A DNA stretch of 64,000 nt, from IMG/VR virus record IMGVR_UViG_3300021959_006010, positions 62,001 to 126,000 of that record. One strand, given 5' to 3'. The position numbers and the translations under genes are program-made. Positions 3,241 through 41,266 of the stretch are shown piece by piece. Every line of letters starts with the position of its first letter. The first letter of the stretch is position 1. The notes under the pieces were generated by a model that was given only the letters and a program-made list of their open reading frames with translations, did not search any database and was not told the origin of the DNA.

Positions 3241-3248
3241 TATTTATA
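3241..3248 (-). promoter_or_regulatory. T4-type late promoter motif TATAAATA
   Basis: Exact T4 late consensus 25 nt upstream of the desaturase, overlapping a sigma70 -10 box. Confidence 0.6.
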
Positions 3249-25024: not shown

Positions 25025-27680
25025 ACAAACTATTAAAAGTAGTATGCTGTTTTGTATCTTCTAGTGGATAGTCGAGCACACCGATCAAGTTGTCTAGTTT
25101 GTTGTCAATAATAGTTTCAGCCATAGCTGCATCATCAAATGGCAATTCTTTGAACCATTCTGGCAAACGTAGCTCATCTGTAGGATATGCTACACTAGTA
25201 TATCCTAGCGGATTTGGTTTAAGTTTACAAACAATAACTTTCATACCGTCTACAATCTCTTGCGAGTATTTGTCACCGTTCATACGTTTTAGTGTATTCC
25301 AGTTGATACTTGCTCGAACGTGTCCAGGCATGTTTGCTTTGCCTTGCTTTTGCTCAAGACGCTGATAGTGTCCAATCTTGTTTGCACGTTTAGGCGAACC
25401 TTTCTCCCAACCTGGCATTTCTTGGAACTCTTTGCGGAACTGTGTAATACGCTCTAGAACATCTTCTTGTGGAGTATCTGTAAGAACCATTAGTAGTAGT
25501 TCTTTTAAGAAGTCCTGCATAAACACCGGAGTGTCTGATCTACGTAAGTCTAGACCCATTGCTTTTACTTTACCAGGCTTACCGTCTGTGTCAGCTCGAA
25601 AACCTTCTAAATCAGTTACTAGTGCCGCATAACGCTTCTTAGTAATGTACAAGCCTGAACTAGCAACAATCTCACGACCGGCTGCAATAACATCACTTCT
25701 TGTCTTAGGACAATGGAATGCTCTTACCATAAAGTCAGGAAATGTAGTATTTGCTTGCTCACACACTTGATCGTACAATGCAATACATTTGTCAATGTTA
25801 AAATCAAGTTTGCCTGCTTCGACATCATCTTTAAGCACAGGCCATGCACTAAAGTATACAGAGTCAGTATCACCATAGATAACTGCTTTACCTACATGAT
25901 CATACTCGCCTGTAATACAACTATTAACTTCGGCACTCATATGCTTAACAATCTGTCTACCAGTTAAGGTTGTTGATTGTCCAATACGTTTATCAAAGAA
26001 TCTACAGCCTGGGTTAAGAATAGCACCGTACAAGCTATTAAGATTAATTTTCTTAACAAGTTGACGTTTATCCCAGTACTCAATCTCTGCATCAATGCCT
26101 GCATCTTTAGCTTTCTTAAGTTTCTTTTGTAGTTCTTTTCGTTCTGCATACCACCTCTTTAGGATACCTGGAATAACACCTTCAAACTCTGTGGTAAAGA
26201 TAGTACCATTTGCACTAAGCATCCACGGCATTTGACTATCAAATATAAGTTGATAAATTTCTGCGCCGCTTAGTACATCTGAACGTCCATCTTCCCAGTC
26301 AACAGTAAGTGCAATATCTTTGCGTTGTTCCATAACTGCTTCGTATTCTTCTGTTGAAAAACGTCCTTCCCAACTACCTGCAAATGACTTTTTCTTTAGT
26401 GTCATGTCTTCGTGTACACGAGCGTCTGAAATCTCTGGACGAATTTGTCCTATAATTGTTTCTGGCGCCATGTTCAGCGCACGAATCACTGACGGATACA
26501 GTGAGTTCAAGTCCATTGAGCCAATGTACTTGTGCAATCCTTTTTTAGGAAACGCAACATAAGCACCTGCTGCCTGTGTGCTTTCTGACTCATCACGTTT
26601 AGGACGATTAGGAACTTGCAGTCCACGGTTGTGTGCTTCGTTAATAATACCTTGTTCTGTAACAGCAACAGCACCCATTGTAGTTTGTAGTAGTACAGTA
26701 TTCTCGTGTGCAATGCTGTTTGACAAGTCGATAAAACGTAGTTTCTTATCTAGTTTGTCTAGTAGTGCAGTATCCTGAATGTTATATTCAATAAACTTGC
26801 GAAAGTCATTGTTGTATAGTTGATCTAGTGTGCCTTCATACGGTACCTTGTTTTCGCCTACTTCAATCTCGCCAATTGCGTCCAGTCGATATGAGTGACG
26901 TTCTTCATAAGTGTATTTGCGATACAGTTCTAAACTGTCCAAGTGTACACGACCTACCAAGTCAAATGTAACTGCTTGCTTCCCGTATTTTTCATACTCA
27001 CGCTTCTTAGGCAACTGACCCCACAAGCAGAAACGTCTTGTATCGTCTTTACTCAATACACGACTTACACGGTTTACAGTATACGGAATATCGTAACCTT
27101 CACTGTTCCAACCACTTAGGATGTCTGCATCTTGTATCAAGTCTAAGAACGTGTTTAGCATGTCTGCTTCTTTTTCAAACAGTACAACACCTTCTAAACC
27201 TTCTACTTCTTTTTCTGCTTGCTCCATAGTAAGTGTCTTAGGCGGAACAGCAAGACACACCATTGTCTCTAACCATTGCAAGTACACAGACACAGACGTA
27301 ATGCCCATAAATGGATCTGCTGGATCAGCAAAGCCACGTTCTGGGTCAAAGTCTGTCTCAATATCGAAAAACGCAATGTTTAGTTTAGGTGCATCTTGGT
27401 TGAGATAGTTCTCACTCAAACATTGGAAGATTGGATTAATGTCGCTTTCGAACAAGTTCTTGCCTTTGTTAATAGCAACTTCTTTTCGAAAGTCTTTTGT
27501 GTTCTTACAAACAATACGACTTAGAGGATCTCCGTACACACTCTTGTACTTGCCTCGAGGATCTTCATAATAGAACGTATATTTTGCAGGGTATTCGTGG
27601 AAATGTCGCTTTCCATCGCGGCGTTCGACTACTCGAATAATATCTTGATCACGATCAAACATCGCATCTACATATGGCAT
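25008..27680 (-). CDS. family B DNA polymerase
   Basis: Exo I FDIETD, motif A DLNSLYPS, motif B KINLNSLYG, motif C YGDTDS, KKRY. Confidence 0.97.
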   Translation of the reverse strand: MPYVDAMFDRDQDIIRVVERRDGKRHFHEYPAKYTFYYEDPRGKYKSVYGDPLSRIVCKNTKDFRKEVAINKGKNLFESDINPIFQCLSENYLNQDAPKLNIAFFDIETDFDPERGFADPADPFMGITSVSVYLQWLETMVCLAVPPKTLTMEQAEKEVEGLEGVVLFEKEADMLNTFLDLIQDADILSGWNSEGYDIPYTVNRVSRVLSKDDTRRFCLWGQLPKKREYEKYGKQAVTFDLVGRVHLDSLELYRKYTYEERHSYRLDAIGEIEVGENKVPYEGTLDQLYNNDFRKFIEYNIQDTALLDKLDKKLRFIDLSNSIAHENTVLLQTTMGAVAVTEQGIINEAHNRGLQVPNRPKRDESESTQAAGAYVAFPKKGLHKYIGSMDLNSLYPSVIRALNMAPETIIGQIRPEISDARVHEDMTLKKKSFAGSWEGRFSTEEYEAVMEQRKDIALTVDWEDGRSDVLSGAEIYQLIFDSQMPWMLSANGTIFTTEFEGVIPGILKRWYAERKELQKKLKKAKDAGIDAEIEYWDKRQLVKKINLNSLYGAILNPGCRFFDKRIGQSTTLTGRQIVKHMSAEVNSCITGEYDHVGKAVIYGDTDSVYFSAWPVLKDDVEAGKLDFNIDKCIALYDQVCEQANTTFPDFMVRAFHCPKTRSDVIAAGREIVASSGLYITKKRYAALVTDLEGFRADTDGKPGKVKAMGLDLRRSDTPVFMQDFLKELLLMVLTDTPQEDVLERITQFRKEFQEMPGWEKGSPKRANKIGHYQRLEQKQGKANMPGHVRASINWNTLKRMNGDKYSQEIVDGMKVIVCKLKPNPLGYTSVAYPTDELRLPEWFKELPFDDAAMAETIIDNKLDNLIGVLDYPLEDTKQHTTFNSLFDFGD

Positions 27681-28342: not shown

Positions 28343-28977
28343 GTAGAAAATACTTTTTTATTGTCAAAAGCACGTTCCCATCCAAAGAACTGTGCTTTAT
28401 AATCCGAATGATCGTCTGAACTTAGATTTTCCCATTCGTCCTTACGTTGGTATAAACGCATTGCACCGTCATACCAATCAGTGTCGTCTATAATTTTTTC
28501 TAGACGTTCTTTTGCAGCATAGGCAGATTCTACATTGTCAAAATCTTGTTCTATGTGTATCACTTCCATTACAATGTCGTGTGTAACAAAATCCAAACTA
28601 AAATCAATACCCCATTTGGGTTTAATGTTTAGCAATTTTTGAAGTATTGGGCGATTTTTGCATACTTCTTCTATTTGCTCTCTTGCTTCTCCGGCAAACG
28701 CATAACGAGTTAATAGCATACAGTGATCTAGTACAAGCCCGTGTTCGCTTTGTTCTACGTCCGTGTACCATTCTTGCACCGGAGCAATATGATATTGTAT
28801 TTCTCTGTTGAGTTTAACACCGTTTGCTTCGTAGTGCAAATGTTCTAAAGGAGTTGGAACCTCGTAACCGTCCTTGTCAAAATCTTTAAATGGAAGTGTT
28901 TCGACTTGTAGTCGTGCTATTGGTTTGCGAAGAAATGGATCTGGATCGAACTTAGGGTATAAGTTCTGAAGTATCAT
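28339..28977 (-). CDS. hypothetical protein
   Basis: 212 aa globular ORF. Confidence 0.75.
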   Translation of the reverse strand: MILQNLYPKFDPDPFLRKPIARLQVETLPFKDFDKDGYEVPTPLEHLHYEANGVKLNREIQYHIAPVQEWYTDVEQSEHGLVLDHCMLLTRYAFAGEAREQIEEVCKNRPILQKLLNIKPKWGIDFSLDFVTHDIVMEVIHIEQDFDNVESAYAAKERLEKIIDDTDWYDGAMRLYQRKDEWENLSSDDHSDYKAQFFGWERAFDNKKVFST

Positions 28978-30230
28978 CCGATCTCTTTTGCTCCCATACG
29001 ATCTAATGCCATATCAATTTGAACAGCTAATTTAAAATCATCCGTTGTAAGGCCTTTTGTATCGTGTGTGTATACAACAAGCTCTACTTCGTTATAAAAG
29101 AACTTGATATCTGCAAAATGATCTAATTCAATCTGTGGTTTTTCGATAACCATTAAGAAACGTAGTACAGTGTTGTAATCGTCAAACGCTACTTTCTTAT
29201 ATAGATATTTTCCTTTACGTATTTCCCAATCTTTAGCATATTCTTTACGTAACGCTTCGGCGTCCATGCCATCAACTTTGGTATATGACTCGCCCATTAT
29301 TTTACCTTTGTGTTTTTCTTTTCGTGGTAAAACTTTTTTCTTATCTTTGTGTGCGCCCATTGCACCACTTTTGCGTAAATCTTGCATAGTTTGTGCATTT
29401 GGATCACGTGGTTTAATTTTTGGCTTATCTTTGTATGCTTCTAGTGCTTTTAATAAACTATCTTTAATAGTTCCGGTTCCCTTGGCAGCATCTTTTAGTG
29501 TAAATGGTTTTCCATTTACATCTGTTATTTGTTGTCTGCTGATAGCAAAATTTGCTCCTTTTAGAGTGAGCTTTATCTGCGGTCTTCCTTTACCATCTTT
29601 TTGATTTACTAACAAACCTATTACAGGTGCAGTTCTTTTCTGTCCTGTTGAATTAGTATAGGTAACGTTATCTCCTTTTTTAAGAACATAACCGTTGTCA
29701 CTAACAGGCCAATCTTCTTTTGGTTGAGCGTCTGGAGTTACTTTATCTGCTTGAGGTTTTTCCTTAGGTTCTTTTTTAGGAGTTTTTTCTTTTTTATCAA
29801 AGCTCATAGGAGCCAATGCATCAATTTTATTATATTTGTCAAAGCCTTGTCTAAACGCATCACCTGCTGTTGGATTTTCTTCAAGATCGTTGTCTATACT
29901 ATCTCCAACAAGTTTATCTTTTAGAGGATGTTCTGTACGCCCAGGTTCCGCAGTTGGCCAAGGATCTGATCCTTTTGCTTGACCACTAGAACCTGTTTTT
30001 TGTCGTTCGTCTAATCTTACACCAGCAAGTGCTGCAAAATCTGTTATGGAATAATCTTTATCCAAGCCTAAACTACCTTCGGTCACTTCTGCACTTTCTT
30101 GTAGATAATTTGTTGTAGGTGCTACATTATCTATAGGCTGTCCAGCTTGCGCTTTTAATTTTGCAAGGTCTTCTCTAGGATCACTTGGATCCAATGCAAA
30201 TAGTTTTTGTTGTAGTGCGTGATAATCCAT
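28974..30230 (-). CDS. modular protein with C-terminal pterin-4a-carbinolamine dehydratase (PCD/PhhB) domain
   Basis: Last about 100 aa: W.....YLYKKVAFDDY, DHFADI, YTHDTKGLTTDDFKLA; N-terminal part low-complexity. Confidence 0.7.
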   Translation of the reverse strand: MDYHALQQKLFALDPSDPREDLAKLKAQAGQPIDNVAPTTNYLQESAEVTEGSLGLDKDYSITDFAALAGVRLDERQKTGSSGQAKGSDPWPTAEPGRTEHPLKDKLVGDSIDNDLEENPTAGDAFRQGFDKYNKIDALAPMSFDKKEKTPKKEPKEKPQADKVTPDAQPKEDWPVSDNGYVLKKGDNVTYTNSTGQKRTAPVIGLLVNQKDGKGRPQIKLTLKGANFAISRQQITDVNGKPFTLKDAAKGTGTIKDSLLKALEAYKDKPKIKPRDPNAQTMQDLRKSGAMGAHKDKKKVLPRKEKHKGKIMGESYTKVDGMDAEALRKEYAKDWEIRKGKYLYKKVAFDDYNTVLRFLMVIEKPQIELDHFADIKFFYNEVELVVYTHDTKGLTTDDFKLAVQIDMALDRMGAKEIG

Positions 30231-30861
30231 TATTCTTTAGCCATTTTAGTTGCTGTTGCGTACATTACTGCTTCTGCATCTTTGCCATAGCGTTTTTTAA
30301 AATCGCCTTTGGCTTTCTTCATACCTTTAACGTATTTCTCTTTTTTTTTGATTCGTCCTTAGTAAGTGTACGTTCTGCAAGTTTTGCAGCTAAAGAGCTT
30401 TTGTAATCGCTGTCTCTTAACTTCTTCTTACTTCTTTTACCTGATGCTTTTGCTGCGTGTATAGCTTTGCGTTGTGCAGCAGACTTGAACTTACCTTCGT
30501 TAACAGCATTGCAGTTACAGTGCTTACAAGTCGGCGGACATGTACAATCTTCTGCTTTAACATCAGATCCACAGCATTTGTCTGAACAATGTGTATCCTT
30601 TGCTTCTCCTAGTTCGCCTGTTGCTTGTTCGTAATCTAAACTATGATAGACACTTCCCATGTAATCTGCTGCTTTGGTAATTTTAGCTTGTTGCCAGCCT
30701 TCAATACCTTCTTCTTCAGAAACACCTTTTAGCATATCGTGTAGTTTGATAGCATACTTTGCAATCTTATATAGATCAGCACGAGCCATTTGCACTTCGT
30801 GGTCACGTTCTGCACGATCTGCAAGGTCACCTAAACCCTCTTTGATCTCATTTTCTTTCAT
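30230..30861 (-). CDS. modular putative head protein with Cys-rich domain, interrupted by a frameshift at an A9 run
   Basis: Frame 0 stops at 30319; the -1 frame continues KEKYVKGMKKAKGDFKKRYGKDAEAVMYATATKMAKE to a TAA overlapping the next ATG. Confidence 0.7.
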
Positions 30862-30882
30862 TGAAAAACTCCGTAATTCGCA

Positions 30883-31821
30883 TTATAGTGTATTTATCTT
30901 TTCCTTTGTACAAGTAATATCAAAATTACAATGACACCAATCCTTGTTACACAATATAGGCTCGTTTGGTAACTCTAATTTATCATCAAATATATTTCCG
31001 ATATTACCACCAACGCCGCACCAGCCTCTACTAATTTTACCGTCAAGGAATACAATAAGTTGTTCTATGCCAATATGACAATTCCATCCATTCCAGTTAT
31101 TCATTTTAGAATTAACTAGCTCGTTGGCTCCGTAATCAACATCTTTGTACGTCATTTTTCCTCTCAAATAAGGAAAACGTTTTGTTTTTATGACTTTATC
31201 TTTGATATTTTTTTGTTGATCTTTTATTAATTGATGCTGTTCGTCAGTATATGGATATAAGTCTCCACTTAAATCATATAACAACGGTTGCAACGATATT
31301 GTTAAATTACCTAAGTCTTTTATAGTATCTGCAACATCATAACAATAATCAAAATTCTTAGGATCCATCATAATATTTACATGGGTTCGAAGATCATTGT
31401 GCAGTATTTTAACTACATCTATAAAATGATCTTTGTTTGCATACTCATGATGGAAACTTAAATTAATTGAACTAAAATATTTTTTGTTAGCTTCCCACCA
31501 CCTTAATGATCTACTACCATTACTAATCAGTCCTACTTTAATATTGTTATCTGAACAAAGTTTACACAACTGATCAAAGTGTTTATAAAGCGTAATTTCT
31601 CCACCAGTAAATTCAAAGTAGAGCTTTTTATTAGGAAAAGATGTTTTTATTTTATTAACAAACCTTTCTACATAAGAAATGTCAGGCCACTTAGTTGATC
31701 CATCGTGTAAGATGTCAGGACAATAACTGCAATTAAAATTACAAGTGTTGCCTAAGCACCAATTTACGATAAACCAGTCTTTATGAGAAGGATCTGAATG
31801 TGTTAATGTTTGCATTAACAA
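30883..31821 (-). CDS. radical SAM protein with C-terminal SPASM/Twitch-like Cys cluster
   Basis: CNFNCSYC, FTGGE, ISNGSR, C.IG...GWC...C...C.C..D..C. Confidence 0.85.
   Translation of the reverse strand: MLMQTLTHSDPSHKDWFIVNWCLGNTCNFNCSYCPDILHDGSTKWPDISYVERFVNKIKTSFPNKKLYFEFTGGEITLYKHFDQLCKLCSDNNIKVGLISNGSRSLRWWEANKKYFSSINLSFHHEYANKDHFIDVVKILHNDLRTHVNIMMDPKNFDYCYDVADTIKDLGNLTISLQPLLYDLSGDLYPYTDEQHQLIKDQQKNIKDKVIKTKRFPYLRGKMTYKDVDYGANELVNSKMNNWNGWNCHIGIEQLIVFLDGKISRGWCGVGGNIGNIFDDKLELPNEPILCNKDWCHCNFDITCTKEKINTL
30891..30898 (-). promoter_or_regulatory. late promoter-like motif GATAAATA
   Basis: Recurrent motif, 30 nt upstream of the 30861 start. Confidence 0.5.
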
Positions 31822-31835
31822 TACTTATTTGTAGT

Positions 31836-32216
31836 TTATTTTTGACGTTTACTTTTGGATTTCTTTTTCTTAGTGCGTGTAACCATACCAGGTCCACCAT
31901 TGACAAAGCCGTTCCCACCACCCATACTAGAACCAATATCTCCAGCAACGGTTTCGTTTAGTCCTGCTTTATACCCGTCTTCATACTCGCTAGTGCGTGG
32001 ACCGTATGCATCACTAGCCTTAGGATCCATTTTACCTGTTTTACCATCAGCAAAACCTTTTTTCCAAATTGTGCTCTTATCAGCATGTGGATCATTTATA
32101 TCGTATGCTTTTCCTTTTGACTTTTGTACAGGCTTCGTTTTAGCAAACTTTGCTCTTAAATCAGCAGCAACGGATTTTTCCCAATCCCTACCTTCTAGTA
32201 AATCTCTAATTTTCAT
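31836..32216 (-). CDS. putative capsid-internal protein
   Basis: N-term MKIRDLLEG; internal LNET; basic tail. Confidence 0.6.
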   Translation of the reverse strand: MKIRDLLEGRDWEKSVAADLRAKFAKTKPVQKSKGKAYDINDPHADKSTIWKKGFADGKTGKMDPKASDAYGPRTSEYEDGYKAGLNETVAGDIGSSMGGGNGFVNGGPGMVTRTKKKKSKSKRQK

Positions 32217-32544
32217 CTGTTAATTTCCTTTGTTTATGGTGCGTACCAGACTTAACTCTACAAGTATTATTACATTCTCTAAAAGGTACATCAGACCAGG
32301 AGTTTTCGTATTCTTTAAAAATGCCTTTTTCTACTATTGTATTAACAGAAAACTTTGTTACATCATTAAAGTCGTTGTCAAACTTCTTTTCTTTAAAAAA
32401 TCTTTCTGTAAAACTACTATCTGTATTTAGTATTTGAGTTTCTTGATAGTCAAACGCTGACCAGCAACAATAAAACAATTTTTTATCTGCAGAAAGATAT
32501 ACACTATTTTCTTTTTTAGCAAAGCAATCTATTTTATCCGTCAT
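32206..32544 (-). CDS. stand-alone SPASM/Twitch-like Cys domain
   Basis: C......VYLSAD....CCW...ECNNTC; directly follows a radical SAM core. Confidence 0.6.
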   Translation of the reverse strand: MTDKIDCFAKKENSVYLSADKKLFYCCWSAFDYQETQILNTDSSFTERFFKEKKFDNDFNDVTKFSVNTIVEKGIFKEYENSWSDVPFRECNNTCRVKSGTHHKQRKLTDEN

Positions 32545-33187
32545 AATCTATAACCTTTGTAGCAGGATATATTGTATATAGTTTTTTATAATCTTTATCT
32601 AAAACATCTAAATGATCTTTCCAAAATCTGTTTGAAGATCTTGCTTTAAATTTTTTAAATCCTAATTCTTTTGCTAACATTTTACAGTCATCTACTTGGT
32701 GTTCATTATGGCGGAAAACATTCATAGTCCATATAGCAGTTCCGCCTTCGTTAATAAAACATTTAGCATTATTAATTATAACATCGAATCTAGTATTTCG
32801 TCTATATAAATGATGAGTGTCTTCTAGACCATCTATACCAAATTCAATTAAAACGTTATTAATTCCTAACCATTTCCAAAAATTAATATGTTGTGCTCCA
32901 CCGTTAGTATTAATGTGTACTTCTATATTTCTTTTTAAAAATTCGTTAATAAATTCTTTAGGATGAGTATGCTTAACTATGTCTCCATAATTTCCATTAA
33001 TTAAAACTTTTTTTAAGTTTTTGAAATACGGATCGTCAAGCGTCTTAGCTATGTCCTTTGCTGACCATTCAGTTATAGACAAACCTTCTTTTAAATTAGG
33101 ACTTGCTCCGCTGTGTCTCATACATTGGGGGCACCGAGCATTGCAATCAGTAGTCGGCTCAATGTGCAAACTTGTTGGTAAGGTCAT
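32534..33187 (-). CDS. radical SAM protein (core only)
   Basis: HIEPTTDCNARCPQC, GNYGD, INTNG, FGIDG; start re-called to MTLPTS. Confidence 0.85.
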   Translation of the reverse strand: MTLPTSLHIEPTTDCNARCPQCMRHSGASPNLKEGLSITEWSAKDIAKTLDDPYFKNLKKVLINGNYGDIVKHTHPKEFINEFLKRNIEVHINTNGGAQHINFWKWLGINNVLIEFGIDGLEDTHHLYRRNTRFDVIINNAKCFINEGGTAIWTMNVFRHNEHQVDDCKMLAKELGFKKFKARSSNRFWKDHLDVLDKDYKKLYTIYPATKVIDYDG

Positions 33188-33354
33188 TTTAAGTATTTTT
33201 GGTATGTTTTCCAATAATTCTGACGTTCATTTGTGCTTGCTCGTCGAGCTTCGTGTTCTTTTATTTTAGCAACATAATGACTTGTTTCTATGCCACTATT
33301 GTTCGGATATAGTTCTACTACTTTTTCTTCCGTCCCGACTTCATGTTTGCGCAC
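33184..33354 (-). CDS. small hypothetical protein (56 aa, GTG start, absent from track)
   Basis: Manual translation MRKHEVGTEEKVVELYPNNSG...NYWKTYQKYLK; stop overlaps the next ATG. Confidence 0.45.
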   Translation of the reverse strand: MRKHEVGTEEKVVELYPNNSGIETSHYVAKIKEHEARRASTNERQNYWKTYQKYLK

Positions 33355-34055
33355 CAATGATACATCCTCGCTTTCTCACCTGAGCTATTCTTGGCTCGTT
33401 TTCTTAAACTTGTAACACTACCATTGCAACTAGCACCTGCACGTTTTACACGCCCTGGTCTGCTTTTGCCTTTTTTCTTACCATCTGCAAAGTTTTCTAA
33501 CTGTGCAAATAAATCACTGCGTTTTTTAGTTGTTTCTTCTATACTATGTCCGCCCTCCATAAGAGCAAGTTCCATAGGAGTAAAACGTTCACTATAAGCT
33601 TTATCTGTTGCTGCTTTTGCCTTTTCAGCATCAGGATGCTTTGGATTAATAGTTACAACTTCGCCGTTGATTAATTCTGCTATATTTGCACTCTTACCTA
33701 TAGTATCTAACAATTGATGTAAGTCGTCATTAGGATCATAGTTACCGCTTTCGTAGCCTAGTTTGCCACGTACTTCTGTGCGATGCCCTGTTTCAGTATT
33801 TTTAATATGCAACACAAGCATTTTTTTATCTCTTTCTAGTTGTAACTTATAACCTTCAGTTAATCCTAGATTGAATAGTACGTTAGTTGACTTGCCTTTT
33901 ACCTTAGAACTTAGTGTAGGAGGCTTTCCGTCTTTGTCAACAGTGTTACCAAATTTTGCTGCTTGCTTTTTAATTTCGTTTGGTCCTACATCAGCTGTTG
34001 TATTAACACCTTTAACAATTCTTCCTACAGCTTCGTCTAGATCATAGATTTTCAT
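33318..34055 (-). CDS. modular putative capsid-internal protein
   Basis: N-term MKIYDLDEA; modules separated by LTEG and LMEG; basic C-terminal module with two Cys. Confidence 0.65.
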   Translation of the reverse strand: MKIYDLDEAVGRIVKGVNTTADVGPNEIKKQAAKFGNTVDKDGKPPTLSSKVKGKSTNVLFNLGLTEGYKLQLERDKKMLVLHIKNTETGHRTEVRGKLGYESGNYDPNDDLHQLLDTIGKSANIAELINGEVVTINPKHPDAEKAKAATDKAYSERFTPMELALMEGGHSIEETTKKRSDLFAQLENFADGKKKGKSRPGRVKRAGASCNGSVTSLRKRAKNSSGEKARMYHWCANMKSGRKKK

Positions 34056-34270
34056 TTTAGATCGTCCCTAAACTCTTCTACGTAGTAATCCATAGGTGTG
34101 TCTGATTTAAGTTCGAACCACTCTCCGTCTGCGTTTGTTCCGCTCAGTAACTTGGGTGTTTTCTTTTTAAAATCTTTTACAATAATACGACGATCCTTGC
34201 CACGATGTGTTACTTCTAACACGTACCAAGGGTTCCAACTTCTCCATATTCTTTTAAAAAACATTCTCAT
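34052..34270 (-). CDS. hypothetical protein
   Basis: 72 aa; ATGA coupling. Confidence 0.7.
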   Translation of the reverse strand: MRMFFKRIWRSWNPWYVLEVTHRGKDRRIIVKDFKKKTPKLLSGTNADGEWFELKSDTPMDYYVEEFRDDLK

Positions 34271-34389
34271 TTTTTATCTTCTTTACAGTTACATTTAGTA
34301 CATACGTCATTTACACATTTAGGACAATCTGGAGAATAACAATGACAATCGTGTCCACATGTTTTGCATTCTCTTTTTGATCCTATCAT
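34267..34389 (-). CDS. metallothionein-like Cys-rich peptide (40 aa, absent from track)
   Basis: MIGSKRECKTCGHDCHCYSPDCPKCVNDVCTKCNCKEDKK; 9 Cys, 2 His; ATGA overlap at both ends. Confidence 0.75.
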   Translation of the reverse strand: MIGSKRECKTCGHDCHCYSPDCPKCVNDVCTKCNCKEDKK

Positions 34390-34604
34390 TTTTTACGCCC
34401 TCGAAATCCATTGTTACCTGTTAGTCCTGGTAAACTGAACCATAGTTTAAACCACTCATCTGTACCAGGTTGTATATTTTTCTCACGTTCGATTTTCTTT
34501 TTTTCAGTACCTGATATTGATAAATTTTCTTCTACTTGGTATAACTTGTAACCTGTGTACTTGTTACGTATACCTGCTAAGTGTTGGAGATCTTCGATTT
34601 CCAT
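34386..34604 (-). CDS. hypothetical protein
   Basis: 72 aa; MEIEDLQHLAGI. Confidence 0.7.
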   Translation of the reverse strand: MEIEDLQHLAGIRNKYTGYKLYQVEENLSISGTEKKKIEREKNIQPGTDEWFKLWFSLPGLTGNNGFRGRKK

Positions 34605-35473
34605 GCGTCTTTATCTCCTTTAGCTGCTGCTTTGCGTCTTGCTGCAATCTTGTCTTGTATGCTAGGTTCAAACTTTTCTTTTTTCTTTTTAACTGTAGCT
34701 TTCTTAGAAGATTTACCAGCAGCATATCCCCAAATTTCATCTACTTCTTTTTTCTTCTTTTTCTTTTCGTCTGAACTATGACCAAATGTTTTATGTACAA
34801 GTTTGTCTAGTTTTCTGTGGAATTCATCTTCTTCGTCTGGTGACGCATCTTCGCCGACTGGTGCTTCAGGATCACCTAGTGCTTGATTTAACAATTTTAC
34901 AGCAACAGGAGCACCATTACCGTACATAAGTTTAGCAGCCTTTAGTTTATCTTCGTCTGACATTTCAGGCCAAGTAGCTCTTAGCTCACTTGCACTTTTA
35001 ATCTGCATACCTGAAAAGTCAAAGTTAATAGTAGGACCATATGCCATATAGCCCATTTCATCTGCTGTGTTTAGATCTTTACCTGTGTAACTACGCAAGT
35101 ATCCTGGCTCGCCATTCTTTTTAGTTTGATCTGGAAGCGGCTGTTCAGCTTTATCCTTCTGGCTTCGAACAAATACTAGTGCTGTGTCTCCGTCTAATAG
35201 ATCTGCGTACTCTCTGTTGTTAAAAGGTGACTTAACCTGCATAAAGTTACTTTCAGGAACACCTGCCATTGCTGCTAGTTTCTTTTTAACTTCAAACGGA
35301 AACGGTCTTGCTTTAGTATCGTTAGTTGCTGCAACATAAACATTCTTTTGACCGAATGTTTTTACTGCCCAGTCATATAAACTTTTATGTCCAGGATGGA
35401 ATGGATGGAAACCGCCTGGCATTACAGCTACAATACGTCTTGCTTTCCCTTCAAATAACTCTCTTAATAACAT
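34577..35473 (-). CDS. HxGH nucleotidyltransferase (cytidylyltransferase-like) with capsid-targeting-like N-terminus
   Basis: MLLRELFEG; PGGFHPFHPGH; RPFPFEVK; SASELR. Confidence 0.78.
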   Translation of the reverse strand: MLLRELFEGKARRIVAVMPGGFHPFHPGHKSLYDWAVKTFGQKNVYVAATNDTKARPFPFEVKKKLAAMAGVPESNFMQVKSPFNNREYADLLDGDTALVFVRSQKDKAEQPLPDQTKKNGEPGYLRSYTGKDLNTADEMGYMAYGPTINFDFSGMQIKSASELRATWPEMSDEDKLKAAKLMYGNGAPVAVKLLNQALGDPEAPVGEDASPDEEDEFHRKLDKLVHKTFGHSSDEKKKKKKEVDEIWGYAAGKSSKKATVKKKKEKFEPSIQDKIAARRKAAAKGDKDAWKSKISNT

Positions 35474-35476
35474 AAC

Positions 35477-36565
35477 TTAGTTCGGTTGCCAACGTGATCT
35501 TGGTACTAGTTTAGTTTTAGTATCAAGAGCAACGTAGCCTTCGCCTCCCTTTTCACCTTGTGTTGATTGTTTAACATCAGTATCAGCATCGTCAAGTTGA
35601 TTGATAATATGATCTTTAACAGTCATTACTTTTTTAACAAGACCAAAAATAGCAGGAAGTGCATTAGGCATTGTTTCGTTCATAGCTGCTAATTTTGCTT
35701 GTTGATTTTTGCTAACTTTTGATGTTTCTAGCCAATCAAAGAACCCGTTTTCAATGTCTCCTAGCTTTTGTACTTTACTCATTTGATTCATATATGTGTA
35801 AATAATCCCAGGAACATTACTTAATCCAGCTTGTCCTTCTAAGAACTTATCCATTATTCCAGCATGTCTTTTTGCCATACTTCTAATTTCTTCAACTTCG
35901 CTTGTATCTACACTAGGTTGATGTGTTACATAAGTTTGTCCTAGAACAACAGCACCTTCTGAATTAAGTTCATTTACATCTGAAATAGGTTTTCCAGCTT
36001 TACCCCCAAATTCGTTAATTTTTGTGTGGACAACAACACCAACTTTACTACCTGCTATGCGTTTACCAAGTTCGCTATTTTTGCTCACTGTGTATGTAAC
36101 TTTATTAGGGGTAAATTCTATACTTCCGTCTTTTATTTCGTATGGCTTTCCAGGATGATATAATATATCACCGTAAATATAACCACGGAAACCTTCCGGA
36201 GTAGCTTCTTTCATAACATCAAATATGCCAGCCATTTCGTTTGCAAAACGCTCACGCCAGTCTTCGCCTTTTCCTGTGCTTAAAATAAACTTTTTAAGAT
36301 CTTCTGCACTAGTTGACTTATTTCTTCCCCAGCCGTTTTTACCTACAAGTACAAAATCGCCATTCTCGTCACGACCATAATACATAGTAGGATAACCGTC
36401 CCATTTAATAGCAATGTCTGAACTGTCAGAACCCATTTTTTCTAAGGTATCAGCTGCCTTCATTGCACCTTTAGAACCTTCAATAAAGACAAGGTCTTCT
36501 AAATGTTGATATTCTCTACCTACTTTTGCTTCTGTTAAAATTGGACGGAATTCTGAAAATCTCAT
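35477..36565 (-). CDS. conserved phage protein with a ligase-like KxDG motif
   Basis: MRFSEFRPILTEAK; HLEDL, IKWDGYP, YGDILY, GEGYV, KLV. Confidence 0.6.
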   Translation of the reverse strand: MRFSEFRPILTEAKVGREYQHLEDLVFIEGSKGAMKAADTLEKMGSDSSDIAIKWDGYPTMYYGRDENGDFVLVGKNGWGRNKSTSAEDLKKFILSTGKGEDWRERFANEMAGIFDVMKEATPEGFRGYIYGDILYHPGKPYEIKDGSIEFTPNKVTYTVSKNSELGKRIAGSKVGVVVHTKINEFGGKAGKPISDVNELNSEGAVVLGQTYVTHQPSVDTSEVEEIRSMAKRHAGIMDKFLEGQAGLSNVPGIIYTYMNQMSKVQKLGDIENGFFDWLETSKVSKNQQAKLAAMNETMPNALPAIFGLVKKVMTVKDHIINQLDDADTDVKQSTQGEKGGEGYVALDTKTKLVPRSRWQPN

Positions 36566-36900
36566 TAATAAGTTCCCTTACAAACTTCTTCCAGTTCTTC
36601 TTCTTTTAAACGTTCGATAATATTATCAATATCGCTAGGAGGAAACATAACGCCTGCTGGCTTGGGCATATTGTATTTTTTACAATATTGTTTTGCTGCA
36701 TCAACAACTACTGGACGCATTGTTTCTGCAAAGCTAAATTCTTCTTTATTTCTATAACAATCGCTCATTTTACTTAACGCTGGAAACAAACTTTTGCGAT
36801 AAATCACCGGATCGTTCTTCATAAAAACCATTAAATCCTCTGCAGGATTAAATGGTAAAGAATCATCGATTGGTTGTGTAAACTCTACAATTTTTACCAT
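36565..36900 (-). CDS. hypothetical protein
   Basis: Start re-called to MVKIVEF; 111 aa. Confidence 0.7.
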   Translation of the reverse strand: MVKIVEFTQPIDDSLPFNPAEDLMVFMKNDPVIYRKSLFPALSKMSDCYRNKEEFSFAETMRPVVVDAAKQYCKKYNMPKPAGVMFPPSDIDNIIERLKEEELEEVCKGTY

Positions 36901-37460
36901 TTTCTGCAACTCCAGTAACGTGCTTTAGTGCGTGGACCAGGATTGTCACAGTTGTGTCTAGCACGGAAACTTCTTCTACGTGCTGGATTACTCTTTTTAA
37001 TCTTCATATTAGGATCACCAAAGTTAACTTTCTTAACGTTTTTAGTCTTAGGATCCTTAACATACACTTTAAACTTTTTAACATCGCCACGCATTGGCTT
37101 GCCTAGTTTAACTTTACGACCTTGATATTCCGCTTCGTCCATTTCGTCATCTTCGTTGAACCACATAACACCGTATTCTAAGAAGAAATCATCGCCGTCG
37201 TATGTTTCTTCTGTAATATCTTCACCTAGTTCAGACGAAATTTCAATGTCAAAGTCATCGTAACCTTGTTCAAACATATAGTCTGCTAAACGGTTAGCAT
37301 ATTCATCTGATTCTTCTTCGCTTAGTTGACGAGGAAGTGCAATTTCGTATACTGTAGCACCTTGTTCGGTTTCGTAAACTTCTTGTTCTGCAAAAATACT
37401 CTCGTCTAGTAGTTGAGCATTTTCTTGTTTTTCCATTACTATTCTTACAAAGTGTTCCAT
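36894..37460 (-). CDS. acidic N-terminus plus basic C-terminal module (KKVNFG...SFRARHNC...YWSCRKW)
   Basis: Basic module resembles one common in aquatic phages and follows a MDEA site. Confidence 0.75.
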   Translation of the reverse strand: MEHFVRIVMEKQENAQLLDESIFAEQEVYETEQGATVYEIALPRQLSEEESDEYANRLADYMFEQGYDDFDIEISSELGEDITEETYDGDDFFLEYGVMWFNEDDEMDEAEYQGRKVKLGKPMRGDVKKFKVYVKDPKTKNVKKVNFGDPNMKIKKSNPARRRSFRARHNCDNPGPRTKARYWSCRKW

Positions 37461-37471
37461 AGCGTTACCCT

Positions 37472-37816
37472 TTAATGATTTAAAATTACTGAATTAATTG
37501 TGCCTTCTGTAAACTCTATTACAGTTCTTACCCATACATAGTTTCCAGTAAAATTTGCAATTTTACTTGACGTTTCAGTTGTGGCTGTATAGTCATGCAC
37601 TGTAAACCAATCTGCTTCAGCAGGATCGATTGCAAGTGTTCCTTGAATTTTTATAGTTCCTGAAAAACTATCATAAGAATACTGTACGGTGTGCAGACCA
37701 TCGCTACGTCCATAGTATCCGTCACCTCTGTACTTGTCTCCTGTTACAGTTTGTGTCGGATCTCCAAGTACATCGTATGTTTGTGTTGTTAATATTGTTT
37801 CACTATTTACTGGCAT
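37472..37816 (-). CDS. hypothetical beta-sandwich protein (possibly structural)
   Basis: 114 aa, Thr/Gly-rich beta strands; late motif immediately upstream. Confidence 0.7.
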   Translation of the reverse strand: MPVNSETILTTQTYDVLGDPTQTVTGDKYRGDGYYGRSDGLHTVQYSYDSFSGTIKIQGTLAIDPAEADWFTVHDYTATTETSSKIANFTGNYVWVRTVIEFTEGTINSVILNH

Positions 37817-37820
37817 ACAG

Positions 37821-38519
37821 TTATTTATCTGTATTACCTTTATAGACTAATCGTTCGACTTTACCGATACTATTTTTAGATAACATTTCTATTAATAGCA
37901 TAAGTTTTGAATCTCGAAGATAAAAATAACAATTACACCATTGATAATTTCTTAAATTTTCGAGTGCCTTTTCTGTTATTCTTGATTTATCTTTATTGTT
38001 TTCCAACCAATCAGCAAGTTCAGGATTTTTTCCTGATTTAATATGCACTCTATATTCGTAAGGTAACGGCTCATTTAAAATGTAAACAGATGCATCATCT
38101 AAGAACGAAGAAATATCTTGTTCTCTCGGCTTATGTACTTCTCTAACATAGGGTTTAATACTTGGATCATTTAGTATGCTGTCTAAATCTTCTTCGTTTT
38201 CTAAATAAATGCTTAGTGCATAATAATCAATTCGTAATCTGTAAGAATCTAACTCTTCAAATTTTTCTACTAATTTTTTAGCATAGAAATAGTCATCAGT
38301 AGAGTATTCTTCTACTCTATTTCTATAACCATTTAGTTGCAAAGGATTATTTGACTTGTATAAAAAGTCTAATTCTTCTAAACACTCATACGCAAACTCC
38401 AACTGCGAGTATCTACCGTAACGTGTTGAGAAAATTTTATTAATAGGATTCCTCAAATTAATTTTATACATAAATTTGTTATACCAAAGCTTTCGAGTAG
38501 TATATTTTTTAACCATCAT
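37821..38519 (-). CDS. hypothetical protein
   Basis: 232 aa; AT-rich; overlaps the clpA end. Confidence 0.7.
   Translation of the reverse strand: MMVKKYTTRKLWYNKFMYKINLRNPINKIFSTRYGRYSQLEFAYECLEELDFLYKSNNPLQLNGYRNRVEEYSTDDYFYAKKLVEKFEELDSYRLRIDYYALSIYLENEEDLDSILNDPSIKPYVREVHKPREQDISSFLDDASVYILNEPLPYEYRVHIKSGKNPELADWLENNKDKSRITEKALENLRNYQWCNCYFYLRDSKLMLLIEMLSKNSIGKVERLVYKGNTDK
37822..37829 (-). promoter_or_regulatory. late promoter-like motif GATAAATA
   Basis: Heads the putative head-cargo block. Confidence 0.5.
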
Positions 38520-40767
38520 ATGGTACCTCTAAAGCAGTTTTAGACTTGTAAGACTCTAATACAAATTTATCTTCTTCTGCATTATAATTAATAGTTACAG
38601 TTCCACCATTTTTAAGATCTCCAAAAAGTAATGATCTTGAAAGAGGACGTTTAATTTCGTTATCGATTACACGTTGTAATGGTCTTGCACCCATTTTAGG
38701 ATCGAATCCTTTTTCTACTAGTGCATCTAATGTTTCGTCAGTAACTTCGATATCGACACCTTTTTCTTTAACCATATTTTTAAGTTCAAGCAAGAATTTT
38801 CCAACAATTTTCATCATTACTTCTTTGCTTAAACGTGCAAAAGTAATAATGCCATCTAGACGATTACGGAATTCTGGACTAAAGAAACGTTTAAGTTCTG
38901 TATCTTCGTAGTCGTAATCATTGTCTGTGCTAAATCCAATGGTGTTTTTCTCTGCGGCTTTTGCACCTAGGTTTGTTGTAAGAATAAGTGTGCAGTTACG
39001 AGCATCTGCTTCCCTCCCGTCAGAGCCTGTTACCTTACCATTGTCCATAAGTTGCAATAAGATTTGAGAAACATCTGGGTGTGCCTTTTCAATCTCGTCA
39101 AGCAACAATACACAGTTAGGATGTTCTTGTAACTTAGTAATAAGGATGCCAGCACTATCTTCAAAACCAACATATCCTGGTGGAGAACCAATCAACTTAG
39201 CAACACTATGCTTTTCTTGATACTCACTCATATCAAGACGAACAAGTTTAACACCTAGTTGTTCAGACAATTGTTTAGCAGTTTCTGTTTTACCTGTACC
39301 AGTTGGACCCATAAAGATAAAACTACCAATAGGCTTATCATCTGGTTTAAGACCTGCTTGGCTTACAAGTATTTTATCAACAATTGATTCAATTGCTTCG
39401 TCTTGTCCGAATACTGTTCCTTTAAGGTTCTTTTCAAGATTTATAAGATTGTCGGTTTCTTTTTGACTGATAGTTTCTACTGGAATATTAACCATCTTCG
39501 CGAGTTCAAATTCAATTTCTTCTCTACTAATACGTTTTTCTTCTACGTTTTCTTTTAGATTAAAGCGAGAACACGCTACGTCAATCAAGTCAATTGCTTT
39601 ATCTGGTAGTTTCTTGTCAGTCTGATACTTAACACTTAGTTTAACGGCTGCTTCGATAGCACTTTCTGTAATTTCAGTTGCGTGGAATTCTTCGTAATAT
39701 TTTTTAATTCCACGTAAAATGTCTTTTGTTACTTCAACACTTGGTTCGTCTACACCTACACGTTGGAATCGACGCATTAGAGCACGATCTTTTTCAAAAT
39801 ACTTGCGATATTCTTCCCAGGTAGTAGAAGCAACTACCTTTATATCTCCTTTACTAAGAGCAGGTTTTAGCATATTAGCAAGATCGTTTGAACTGTCTTT
39901 TGATCCAGCACCCGCACCATTCATCATATGTGCTTCGTCAACAAACATAATTGTTTTGCCTTTTTTAGTTAGTGCTTGAATAACTAATTTTAGACGTTCT
40001 TCAAAATCACCACGATATTTTGAACCAGCAAGCATGCCGCCAATGTCAAGATTATACACTTCATAATCTTTTAGGAACTCAGGCACGTTTCCGTTTACAA
40101 TTTTCCAAGCAAGACCTTCTGCAATAGCAGTTTTACCTACACCAGGATCACCAACAAGAATAACATTGTTTTTACTGCGTCGACCTAGTGCAAGAGAAAT
40201 GCTTTCAATTTCCTCTTCACGGCCGATTACAGGATCAATTTTTCCTTTGCTAGCACGATTATTAAGGTTGTCAGTAAATGCTCTTAATGCTTTTTGGGCT
40301 GCACCGCTAATTTCTTCCTCTTCGTAGTCGTCTTCCATTTCTGCATTTATGTAATTAGAGAATTTTTGTTTTTCAATTCCTGCTTTCTCTAACCAATAAC
40401 AACCGATACTTTTCTTTTCACCAAGTATTGCAATAAGAACGTCGGCTAACTCAATTTGCTGACGTCCATGGAACAATACTTGTGTAAATGCTCGATTTAA
40501 GCAACGTTCAACTGTTTGAGTTTTCTTGGGTTTAAAATCTTCAGATTCAATTTTGATATCATCGCAATTATTACGAAGATGATTTTCTAAGTTCTTTTTA
40601 ATAAAAAGAGGATCAGATCCATAACCTTCAATAATTTTTTCGAGATTCTCGTCACATAGCATTGCAAATAGCAAGTGCTCTAGTGTCAAGTATTCGTGCT
40701 TTAATTTTTGTGCATCCTTGATTGCTTTTTCGAACACTAATTGTAGTTCTTTACTAGGTTCAACCAT
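38509..40767 (-). CDS. clpA: ATP-dependent Clp protease ATP-binding subunit ClpA
   Basis: Clp N domain (HEYLTLEHLL), GDPGVGKT, GPTGTGKT, DMSEY.E.HSVAKLIGSPPGYVG, GARPL; 752 aa with no ClpB M-domain. Confidence 0.92.
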   Translation of the reverse strand: MVEPSKELQLVFEKAIKDAQKLKHEYLTLEHLLFAMLCDENLEKIIEGYGSDPLFIKKNLENHLRNNCDDIKIESEDFKPKKTQTVERCLNRAFTQVLFHGRQQIELADVLIAILGEKKSIGCYWLEKAGIEKQKFSNYINAEMEDDYEEEEISGAAQKALRAFTDNLNNRASKGKIDPVIGREEEIESISLALGRRSKNNVILVGDPGVGKTAIAEGLAWKIVNGNVPEFLKDYEVYNLDIGGMLAGSKYRGDFEERLKLVIQALTKKGKTIMFVDEAHMMNGAGAGSKDSSNDLANMLKPALSKGDIKVVASTTWEEYRKYFEKDRALMRRFQRVGVDEPSVEVTKDILRGIKKYYEEFHATEITESAIEAAVKLSVKYQTDKKLPDKAIDLIDVACSRFNLKENVEEKRISREEIEFELAKMVNIPVETISQKETDNLINLEKNLKGTVFGQDEAIESIVDKILVSQAGLKPDDKPIGSFIFMGPTGTGKTETAKQLSEQLGVKLVRLDMSEYQEKHSVAKLIGSPPGYVGFEDSAGILITKLQEHPNCVLLLDEIEKAHPDVSQILLQLMDNGKVTGSDGREADARNCTLILTTNLGAKAAEKNTIGFSTDNDYDYEDTELKRFFSPEFRNRLDGIITFARLSKEVMMKIVGKFLLELKNMVKEKGVDIEVTDETLDALVEKGFDPKMGARPLQRVIDNEIKRPLSRSLLFGDLKNGGTVTINYNAEEDKFVLESYKSKTALEVPYDG

Positions 40768-41266
40768 TCACTTTCCTCTTTTTTAATTTATTTTGTTTTT
40801 TCAACGCTCGGTCCAGTTTAAGTTTACTTACACGATCGGTGTATTCAATACCATTAAGGTGATCAAACTCGTGTAAGAAACAACGTGCATCAATATCATA
40901 TAATTCTATTATACATTCTTTAGCATTTATGTCAAGATATTTGGCAGTAATATATTTAGGTCTTCTTACGTGCAGAAATAATTCGGGATGGCTCAAACAT
41001 CCTTCTATCATTAGCTCAGTTTCTTTGCTAGCAGAAGTTACTTCAGGATTGATAATAACTAAAGGAGTTTTATCTTCTAACAATATAGGTCTCATTACAA
41101 AAATTTGAGCATCAAGTGCAACTTGATTTGCACTCATTCCTAGTCCACTTAGAGTTTGCATAAGTGCTACCATCTTCTCACCTATATCTTTAGCATCTAA
41201 AGCATCAAAGTCAAATGGCTTTACTACCTTCTGTAACCATTCATTCGGTGATTTAACTAATTCCAT
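40760..41266 (-). CDS. def: peptide deformylase
   Basis: GMSANQ, EGCLS, HEFDH. Confidence 0.93.
   Translation of the reverse strand: MELVKSPNEWLQKVVKPFDFDALDAKDIGEKMVALMQTLSGLGMSANQVALDAQIFVMRPILLEDKTPLVIINPEVTSASKETELMIEGCLSHPELFLHVRRPKYITAKYLDINAKECIIELYDIDARCFLHEFDHLNGIEYTDRVSKLKLDRALKKQNKLKKRKVNG

Follow-up and report, generated by a model that had tools for sequence, protein, structure and literature searches.

The window analysed here is a 64,000-nucleotide stretch, bases 62,001-126,000, of the 275,366-bp viral contig IMGVR_UViG_3300021959_006010, and its subject is a block of genes at positions 28974-37460 on the minus strand, the strand that holds nearly all genes of the window. The contig is that of an uncultured phage whose replication, baseplate and late-promoter features relate it to T4. 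The block lies between a ClpA-like gene and the gene for a DNA polymerase (25008-27680) that is 43-50% identical to those of the giant phages Sinorhizobium Phosso, Agrobacterium Atu_ph07, Vibrio 2.275.O and the PBECO4/Asteriusvirus group; baseplate and tail-fibre genes are found at the right end of the window. Most products of the block, near-variants included, begin with a leader of 8-13 residues of the form M-[KR/L]-h-x-[D/E]-[L/F]-x-E (h, hydrophobic; x, any residue). The initial annotation of the window had read the whole block as packaged polyprotein cargo, that is, proteins with N-termini resembling capsid-targeting sequences (CTS) and with internal sites for a prohead protease. In what follows this proposal is weighed against the window itself and against related viral loci, which are labelled with L-numbers (L002, L003 and so on).

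Leader peptides and late-promoter motifs

The N-termini singled out by the initial annotation, MKIRDLLEG, MKIYDLDEA, MLLRELFEG, MRFSEFRPILTEA and, more weakly, MKENEIKEG, all start minus-strand genes of the block (Table 1). With a strict definition of the motif (^M[KRL]h.[DE][FLI]) and one greedy gene call per locus, the expected N-terminal enrichment was observed: 4 of 15 block genes begin with the motif, as compared with 1 of the 80 other minus-strand genes of the window (Fisher p = 0.002), and it occurs at none of 444 internal Met residues. The sole strict-motif gene outside the block, MKLSEIIAWGLALGGWAVAIDY, runs on into a hydrophobic stretch, and the other highly expressed late genes of the window do not carry the motif. 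Near-variants (MVKIVEF, MEIEDLQHLAG and MKENEIKEG) start three more block genes. The leader is missing from the two radical S-adenosylmethionine (radical-SAM) genes, from the 112-aa, 40-aa and one of the 72-aa open reading frames (ORFs; the last at 34052-34270), and from the 418-aa and 188-aa proteins. Assignment of the entire span to packaged cargo therefore went too far, since the radical-SAM cassette is leaderless save for its 126-aa gene, as are several small ORFs; the two radical-SAM genes and several of the small leaderless ORFs are probably not cargo. A chance origin of the shared leader is ruled out by the enrichment tests. Codon usage varies among the leaders, and conservation is therefore at the level of the peptide and not of the DNA, which also rules out a DNA-level repeat or regulatory element at the gene starts.

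Across 91 related viral loci, the strict leader is present on 187 of 1092 distinct same-strand ORFs, which, once stripped of the N-terminus, still form 20 or more unrelated groups. These ORFs cluster around the gene for a DUF6267 protein, mostly downstream of it. Within the first 30 loci, where about a dozen unrelated families carry the leader, a looser form of the motif was found at 61 of 634 N-proximal Met residues and at 12 of 1382 deeper ones (p = 9e-21). Paralogy as the source of the shared N-termini was ruled out, because the proteins, trimmed of 12-14 N-terminal residues, still sort into no fewer than 14-20 unrelated groups. Among 158 distinct leaders, a set dominated by two families, the first Glu at or after position 7 is residue 8 in 63 and residue 12 in 36 more.

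The DUF6267 family illustrates the modular nature of the leader. Nearly all of its 1636 homologues begin with MRFxEF(R/K), followed by a linker of 0-8 residues and (I/V)LTEA. In the AlphaFold model of the window protein (mean predicted local distance difference test score, pLDDT, 84), residues 1-17 are the sole segment with a pLDDT below 50 and the fold begins at G16-R17. The orthologue of cyanophage S-WAM1 is leaderless and begins at the conserved HLEHLEDD core. Similarly, the cytidylyltransferases of S-WAM1 (MRFRQFIIE↓A; arrows mark the position after the cleavage-type Glu), P-TIM40 (MRFLDFIKE↓A) and S-CREM2 (MKNFSSFLTE↓A) carry a leader, and those of S-CAM4 and S-RIM44 are leaderless. Orthologues may have the leader or lack it, which makes it a portable add-on.

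The CTS, the specificity of the gp21 protease and the hypervariable genes of the internal proteins (IPs) are classical T4 knowledge. In the T4 record (NC_000866), IPII and IPIII begin with MKTYQEFIAE↓A, which is the T4 signal quoted in the initial annotation, and IPI with MKTFKEF-TSTTTPVST-ITE↓A, which has a 9-aa linker; gp24 begins with MAKINELLRE↓S, gp22 with MLKEQLIAE↓A, and the gp23 site reads ...FLTE↓AEIGG. Propeptides of T4 head-internal proteins are 10-19 residues long, with residues 4 and 7 serving targeting and residues 8 and 10 processing (PMC9026906). The leader of the block repeats this pattern one residue earlier, with hydrophobic residues 3 and 6 around an acidic residue 5 and then h-x-E, a correspondence of pattern and not an alignable homology. 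In the window it ends with a gp21-type site and a small residue (LLE↓G, LDE↓A, LFE↓G, LTE↓A, IKE↓G).

Thus the block proteins have in common with T4 IPI, IPII, IPIII and Alt a short leader at the N-terminus, in which an acidic residue lies between two hydrophobic ones spaced by three and an h-x-E precedes a small residue. Both systems place their leaders on unrelated, often small basic proteins encoded in a hypervariable locus, with a late promoter in T4 and late-promoter-like motifs in the block, and the stretch that links the targeting part to the cleavage part differs within DUF6267 as it does between IPI and IPII/III. The 10-residue propeptide of gp24 is almost the consensus leader of the block (compare MKINELI... 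and MKISELLE), and the LTE↓A of gp23 is the DUF6267 site. The two systems differ in that the hydrophobic residues stand at 3 and 6 and not at 4 and 7, the cleavage-type Glu is usually residue 8, and dozens of families bear the leader as compared with three or four in T4. Furthermore, unlike the T4 internal proteins, the putative cargo of the block comprises enzymes as well as fusions of several modules that have Glu junctions inside them, its mature parts are not homologous to those of T4, and it is known here from genes alone.

Late-promoter-like motifs accompany the block. The heptamer ATAAATA occurs 14 times in the window (29.5 expected), always on the coding strand, and 12-13 of the 14 copies lie within ~35 nt upstream of gene starts (most at 15-35 nt), including those of tail-fibre and baseplate genes. 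Examples are found at 3241, 4609, 9492, 30891, 37822, 55375, 56794, 60135, 60901 and 63889, usually as GATAAATA or AATAAATA, a distribution that fits a putative promoter of the T4 late type (in T4, TATAAATA). Where the initial annotation had noted upstream motifs, two copies of GATAAATA are indeed present (Table 1), one at the head of the co-directional run that starts at 37816 and the other before the 180-aa gene, and not every block gene is preceded by one; most genes would need read-through from these sites, and no strong or convincing terminator was seen inside the block. A late-promoter motif also heads the block in L002, L003, L008 and L012, with GATAAATA ~30 nt before the first block gene (MEHFVR) in the last three, and CATAAATAC precedes orthologous MREQEISEG genes in L006, L011 and L012. 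We take the block to be a hypervariable and probably late-expressed locus. In a second group of DUF6267 contigs (L015:11919, L021:13709, L023:10219), only ~5 nt separate GATAAATAA from the ATG called for genes of small basic MLLREFF... proteins; this spacing is too short for a promoter and a ribosome-binding site, and therefore either the start or the promoter is misread there.

Head genes of relatives and a cyanophage virion

Head genes were sought in the window by tblastn with the portal, protease, scaffold and capsid proteins of T4, SD-15_S21 and Vibrio phage 2.275.O. The gp21-like protease that processing of this type would call for was not found in the window and ~30 kb of flanks (~94 kb of the contig). 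The flanks themselves (~20 kb on the right, 10 kb on the left) contain only fibre-like and metabolic genes, and this contig was not among the matches listed by a protease alignment or by a degenerate capsid DNA pattern when its own head module was looked for. Proteases of the T4 gp21 type (S77) are encoded by the polymerase relatives Vibrio phage 2.275.O, SD-15_S21 and K64-1 and by 576 viral contigs.

Eighty protease-containing head loci (L037-L116) show the order portal, an ORF of 67-85 aa, an acidic protein, protease, scaffold and capsid protein; none of the head loci of the clade has close genes in common with the window. The 67-85-aa ORF occupies the position of T4 gene 67 and starts with MKLFEMFD, MRFNDLLE, MKFKELTE or MLLREF, and its counterpart in the cultured Vibrio phage 2.275.O (L036:8257-8499) starts with MKLVELFE↓A. 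In this clade, then, a protein of the head module carries the leader. In addition, the capsid proteins of the clade keep L-x-E↓x-A-T-x-G where the LTE↓A site of T4 gp23 would fall, a correspondence established by eye. The specificity that may be predicted for the clade protease fits the leader and junction sites. The T4 prohead shell and core proteins (gp24, gp22, gp23, gp67, gp68) are structural components whose genes belong to the head module; the genes of the block are remote from head genes, and their products are not homologous to these T4 proteins.

Virion data are available for a T4-like cyanophage. Mass spectrometry of CsCl-purified S-CREM2 virions detected a cytidylyltransferase, ORF154 (3 peptides), together with its neighbours ORF155, ORF156 and ORF160, and the authors suggest that all four are encapsidated (PMC10665884). 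We found that S-CREM2 gp154 carries the CTS-like leader listed above, that CTATAAATA ends 22 nt upstream of its start, and that it is homologous to the leader-bearing enzyme encoded after DUF6267 in L002, L003 and L008 (E-values 1e-20 to 5e-23). The 298-aa protein of the window is linked to it through L002 (6e-15 for the window protein and L002, 1e-20 for L002 and gp154). S-CREM2 ORF154 thus resembles the block enzyme in being a homologous HxGH enzyme with a CTS-like leader, and its gene is preceded by the late promoter TATAAATA. It differs in having no adjacent DUF6267, few genes and no bead-like fusions, and neither leader nor processing was noted by the authors. In the papers covered by our literature search, neither a CTS-like leader nor bead-like modular cargo is described for cyanophages or T4-related giant phages.

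Modules, junctions and individual genes

Unrelated modules in the block proteins are separated by hydrophobic-x-Glu sequences, and all eight sites of this kind listed in the initial annotation exist. The 245-aa protein, which has 4532 homologues, is the clearest case. Its family is built from the leader, module A (GRIVKGVNTT...NLGL[T/A]E), module B (G[YF]KLQLERD...), variable inserts, E-NFADGKxKGKSRPGR and a basic module C. Inserts in homologues include NT5C, a pterin-4a-carbinolamine dehydratase (PCD) domain, DUF5661/IF2_N, a sigma-70 region-4-like segment and several unknowns; for one homologue a ParB N-terminal domain (PF02195) is on record, which our own Pfam scan did not recover. In the window protein, module B (G68-E167) is folded and is followed by a GGHS linker, E↓NFADGK and module C. 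The model of this protein (mean pLDDT 58), too weak overall for a fold search and used for domain boundaries only, shows well-folded parts only at residues 68-167 and 207-240; LTE↓G68 and LME↓G168 bracket the first of these and lie in linkers of low pLDDT that are nevertheless conserved. The sequence ENFADGKxKGKSRPGR (residues 187-202) is invariant though predicted to be disordered, and where modules have been inserted a copy flanks them on either side. It may serve as a joint for recombination, as a protease site or as a DNA-binding motif whose core, SRPGR, is basic.

The same modules are found alone, fused and permuted. Module A occurs as a separate gene of 86-101 aa, and in L006 the leader stands directly on module B. 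Module K (KAPPGREK...) follows the leader MKIKEVVE↓ as a stand-alone protein in L008 and follows GVLE↓ inside an enzyme fusion in L003. Modules B, C, K and H are preceded by Glu in 296 of 297 cases, in 10, 16, 3 and 7 upstream contexts, respectively. Residues 1-310 of the 418-aa protein are encoded by a separate gene in L006, L011 and L013 and are joined here at IMGE↓S to the PCD module (residues 318-417), itself a separate 133-aa gene in L009. The halves of the 188-aa protein, joined here at LGE↓D, are two genes in L002, and the modules of the 180-aa protein (joints LGE↓A and VNE↓G) are permuted in L009. A fossil internal leader, KEVDEIWG (residues ~243-250; compare MKVNEIFG), is found in the basic tail of the 298-aa protein, where residues 243-294 correspond to the N-terminal part of a leader protein encoded on its own in L009. 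In all five of these proteins (418, 188, 180, 245 and 298 aa) the points of fusion, splitting or permutation coincide with h-x-E sites.

Two further known systems resemble the block in part. The phiKZ-like giant phages, whose cleavage motif is S/A/G-x-E, belong to another lineage, have no conserved N-terminal leader of the MKxxEL type and encode proteins that are not homologous to those of the block. Many of their head-internal proteins are cut after Glu at several sites and ejected into the host (PMC9026906, PMC5694885, PMC10052503). Multi-site Glu processing followed by ejection, as seen with the inner-body proteins of such phages (201phi2-1, phiKZ with its gp175 protease, SPN3US with gp245), is what is proposed for the block. 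Polyvalent proteins of phages and conjugative elements combine unrelated small effector or enzyme domains whose order varies, and have been proposed to accompany the DNA into the recipient, with processing in some cases; MuF and large methylase or helicase modules are their typical marker domains. None of these was found in Pfam scans of a subset of the block and related proteins, and the block differs further in that its modules are small and that each stand-alone version bears the same N-terminal leader.

The most serious alternative concerns this polyprotein part: the leader may target proteins to the head, with the multi-module proteins acting intact and the junction Glu being no more than the conserved first residue of a mobile module or flexible linker. 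The sequences E↓NFADGK and E↓G[YF]KLQLERD can equally be read as ENFADGK and EGYKLQ, position P3 of the junctions is not consistently Leu or Ile (Gln, Tyr, Thr and Ala occur, P2 then often being hydrophobic), and the T4 internal proteins and Alt are known to be cut at the N-terminus only. Because the invariant Glu may belong to the modules, its presence at their borders is not proof of cleavage. On the other side, the block proteins contain 25 matches to [LIVMF]xE[GAST] as compared with 10.9 ± 3.1 in shuffled sequences (~2.3-fold), or 0.89 per 100 aa as compared with 0.48 in the other proteins of the window (1.8-fold). The junction motifs are conserved within linkers predicted to be disordered, one and the same module can follow a leader ending in ...VVE↓ or an internal ...VLE↓, and fossil leaders are found at fusion points; multiple Glu-specific cuts per protein are also documented for phiKZ-like head proteins (PMC9026906). 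The Glu junctions fit protease sites at module borders, and we consider internal cleavage plausible and its absence somewhat unlikely.

Table 1. Genes and motifs of the block and its upstream neighbours, in window coordinates.
Feature	Position	Strand	Remarks
ClpA-like ATPase, 752 aa	38509-40767		TIGR02639, 2e-263
Late-promoter-like motif GATAAATA	37822-37829	-	5 nt before ATG at 37816 (114-aa gene); others typically 15-35 nt
114-aa protein, first late gene before the block	37472-37816	-	Weak matches: phrog_13657, 2e-13; phrog_14467 'virion structural protein', 4.5e-8
188-aa two-module protein (residues 1-76, 83-188), leaderless	36894-37460	-	Basic C-terminal domain ends ...RRRSFRARHNCDNPGPRTKARYWSCRKW
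114-aa ORF	36565-36909	-	Probable true start Met4 (nt 36900), giving MVKIVEF; homologues begin MKINEFFDQPIDD or MVKLVEF
DUF6267 protein, 362 aa	35477-36565	-	PF19782, 5.6e-25; begins MRFSEFRPILTEA
DUF6267 leader	36530-36565	-	MRFSEF-RP-ILTE↓A
298-aa HxGH nucleotidyltransferase (cytidylyl/adenylyltransferase-like)	34577-35473	-	Leader MLLRELFE↓G at 35450-35473
72-aa protein	34386-34604	-	Start MEIEDLQHLAGI, a leader variant (MEIEDLQHLAG); basic end ...FRGRKK; conserved in L003, L006, L008, L011, L012
40-aa Cys-rich peptide, leaderless	34267-34389	-	Read from sequence; no homologue in 91 loci
72-aa protein, leaderless	34052-34270	-	Conserved in L303, L287, L268
245-aa beads-on-a-string protein	33318-34055	-	Leader MKIYDLDE↓A; junctions LTE↓G 33852-33863, LME↓G 33552-33563
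Insertion: radical-SAM (312 aa), 126-aa leader protein, 112-aa ORF, radical-SAM (226 aa)	30883-33214	-	
126-aa Gly-rich low-complexity basic protein	31836-32216	-	Leader MKIRDLLE↓G (32193-32216); KKKKSKSKRQK tail; AAGGA ribosome-binding site upstream
Late-promoter-like motif GATAAATA	30891-30898	-	~30 nt before the 180-aa MKENEIKEG gene
180-aa protein	30319-30861	-	Weak leader MKENEIKE↓G, helical module, LGE↓A, Cys-rich module, VNE↓G, basic tail
418-aa fusion, leaderless	28974-30230	-	C-terminal PCD: PF01329, 2.9e-15, residues 325-406

Nucleotidyltransferases and a PCD domain had been named in the initial annotation as members of an effector kit, and both kinds are present: the HxGH enzyme, the DUF6267 protein with its weak ligase-like fold matches, and the PF01329 domain of the 418-aa fusion (Table 1). 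In DUF6267, K54-W-D-G57 is invariant; it would correspond to the motif I lysine (KxDG) of the ATP-dependent RNA/DNA ligase superfamily. A fold search of PDB with the DUF6267 model returned mostly RNA and DNA ligases, as weak matches (E-values 0.05-1, template modelling scores below 0.25), and an 'RNA ligase' of Atu_ph07 was matched in BFVD (E-value 2.7e-4); a sequence search of PDB gave no meaningful match. The protein looks like a ligase-like nucleotidyltransferase. Its gene adjoins that of a cytidylyltransferase-like enzyme here and in T4-like cyanophages, and the two are fused in S-PM2 and several uncultured phages; the adjacent genes are therefore regarded as a functional pair, whose products probably act on one substrate.

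The radical-SAM cassette looks like a private insertion: no homologues of its four genes were found in the other 91 DUF6267 loci. The Cys-containing ORF of 112 aa shares 11 nt with the 226-aa radical-SAM gene of the cassette, and the two may represent one split enzyme (a core and an auxiliary-cluster domain) or a maturase with its substrate. Metallothionein-like Cys-rich modules were seen in the 180-aa protein (CSDKCCGSDVKAEDCTCPPTCKHCNCN, residues 88-121) and in the 40-aa peptide (CKTCGHDCHCYSPDCPKCVNDVCTKCNC); modules of this kind are met again in related loci, some as leader proteins of their own and some as parts of fusions. The Cys-rich segments may bind metal and the basic segments DNA.

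A megablast search of 50,697 phage records with the block found no near-identical DNA. Judged by eye, other N-termini encoded in the window resemble those of clamp-loader, GroES-like, ThyA and DnaJ-like proteins. The N-terminus encoded at 11973-12869, MMKLRYSEAFYSVQGEGKYVGV, resembles a QueE-type radical-SAM enzyme of the 7-deazaguanine pathway, and the Vibrio relative encodes QueF, QueC and FolE-like genes; on these grounds the phage DNA may carry a deazaguanine modification. A 2637-aa fibre-like ORF (L317:9692-17605, contig 128,606-136,519), on a stretch overlapping the right edge of the window, has its end ~2.6 kb past the window. The ORFs upstream of it have ferredoxin-reductase-like and IscA-like N-termini, and an exact-protein look-up of the giant fibre protein returned no record.

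A candidate system for packaged and injected cargo

The central idea of the initial annotation survives in the form of a T4-type targeting and processing leader on late cargo, to which the layout and portability of the leader, its predicted disorder, the late motifs, the head-module ORF and the virion homologue all point. We assign a probability of roughly 0.55 to the reading that the block encodes a T4-type system of CTS-like leaders and modular cargo that would be targeted, cut, packaged and injected. As the prohead assembles, the h-x-[D/E]-h core would dock the protein onto the scaffolding core, and the gp21-type prohead protease would then cut after the Glu of the following h-x-E; the mature protein would remain in the head with the DNA and enter the host at infection. 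The cargo would consist of paired nucleotidyltransferases (the ligase-like DUF6267 and the HxGH enzyme), small basic and Cys-rich peptides, and modular proteins with swapped PCD, NT5C and DUF5661 domains. The conserved disordered linkers ending in h-x-E probably serve as additional sites for the protease, and many would be fossil leaders stemming from gene fusion, so that several mature pieces could arise from one polypeptide.

Several observations weigh against this reading. Genes for gp21, portal and capsid proteins were found neither in the window and its ~30 kb flanks nor within 10 kb of DUF6267 in 92 loci, and the prohead protease is presumed to be present from its occurrence in relatives. 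The detection of S-CREM2 ORF154 amounts to three peptides, and its authors did not map N-termini. Enzymes of 33-40 kDa exceed the T4 internal proteins in size, although Alt of T4 is even larger. The proteins of 418 and 188 aa are leaderless, most genes of the block lack a promoter motif of their own, and replication genes surround the block. Finally, targeting, cleavage, packaging and injection are what we infer for a phage that, like its close relatives, is represented by its genes only.

The leader might instead be a peptide signal with another purpose, for example a docking tag for the ClpA-like unfoldase or DnaJ-like protein of the phage that serves timed degradation, unfolding or assembly without capsid targeting. 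Short N-terminal motifs are a known means of substrate recognition by Clp ATPases, and the genes for the DnaJ-like, 168-aa, ClpA-like and 230-aa proteins stand in this order directly upstream of the leader block (window 37821-42062), an arrangement kept in L002, L003, L008 and L012. We nevertheless find this explanation improbable: the motif matches the layout of the T4 CTS including the h-x-E site, the same leader is found on the head-module ORF in loci without a ClpA link and in T4-like cyanophages, a leader-bearing homologue is present in virions, and no ClpP gene was seen in the window. Handling of the cargo by the DnaJ-like and ClpA-like proteins as chaperone or unfoldase is conceivable. 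Least probable of all is a functionless peptide left behind by cassette recombination at a conserved 5' end or by selection on translation initiation, for although the locus is hyperplastic with its fusions, splits and permutations, recombination at conserved flanks shuffles ORFs in T4-type phages (PMC2839356) and the Lys and Ile codons at positions 2-3 are AT-rich, leader codons vary while residue classes are kept, initiation efficiency does not explain an acidic residue 5, a hydrophobic residue 6 and Glu 8, MRFxEF and LTEA persist in the 1636 DUF6267 homologues despite the varying linker, and other highly expressed late genes of the window lack the motif.

Thousands of homologues of the DUF6267 and 245-aa families occur in metagenomes. 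Extending the reading of a T4-type leader system beyond the window, we tentatively propose, with less confidence than for the block itself, a large and so far undescribed lineage of uncultured T4-related giant phages with a combinatorial system of injected effectors. A common grammar of leader (8-13 residues) and Glu-ended linker would allow any small domain, whether enzyme, DNA binder or Cys-rich peptide, to serve as a stand-alone protein or a polyprotein bead; the products would be loaded into the prohead, cut by its protease and delivered together with the DNA, and the cyanophage cytidylyltransferase would bear the same address.

Phage proteins co-injected with DNA act before phage gene expression and are thus prime candidates for action against host defences, and the T4 class of injected internal proteins is small and well studied. 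If the proposed system is real, the combination of leader, late-promoter motif and Glu junctions would provide a rule for finding dozens of new families of packaged proteins in metagenomes. It would also give a place of action to several orphan families, namely DUF6267, the phage 'cytidylyltransferase', phage PCD, DUF5661 and the 245-aa family, and would account for the presence of a metabolic-looking enzyme in a cyanophage virion proteome. The short leaders and linkers would then be natural tags for loading foreign proteins into the heads of large phages.

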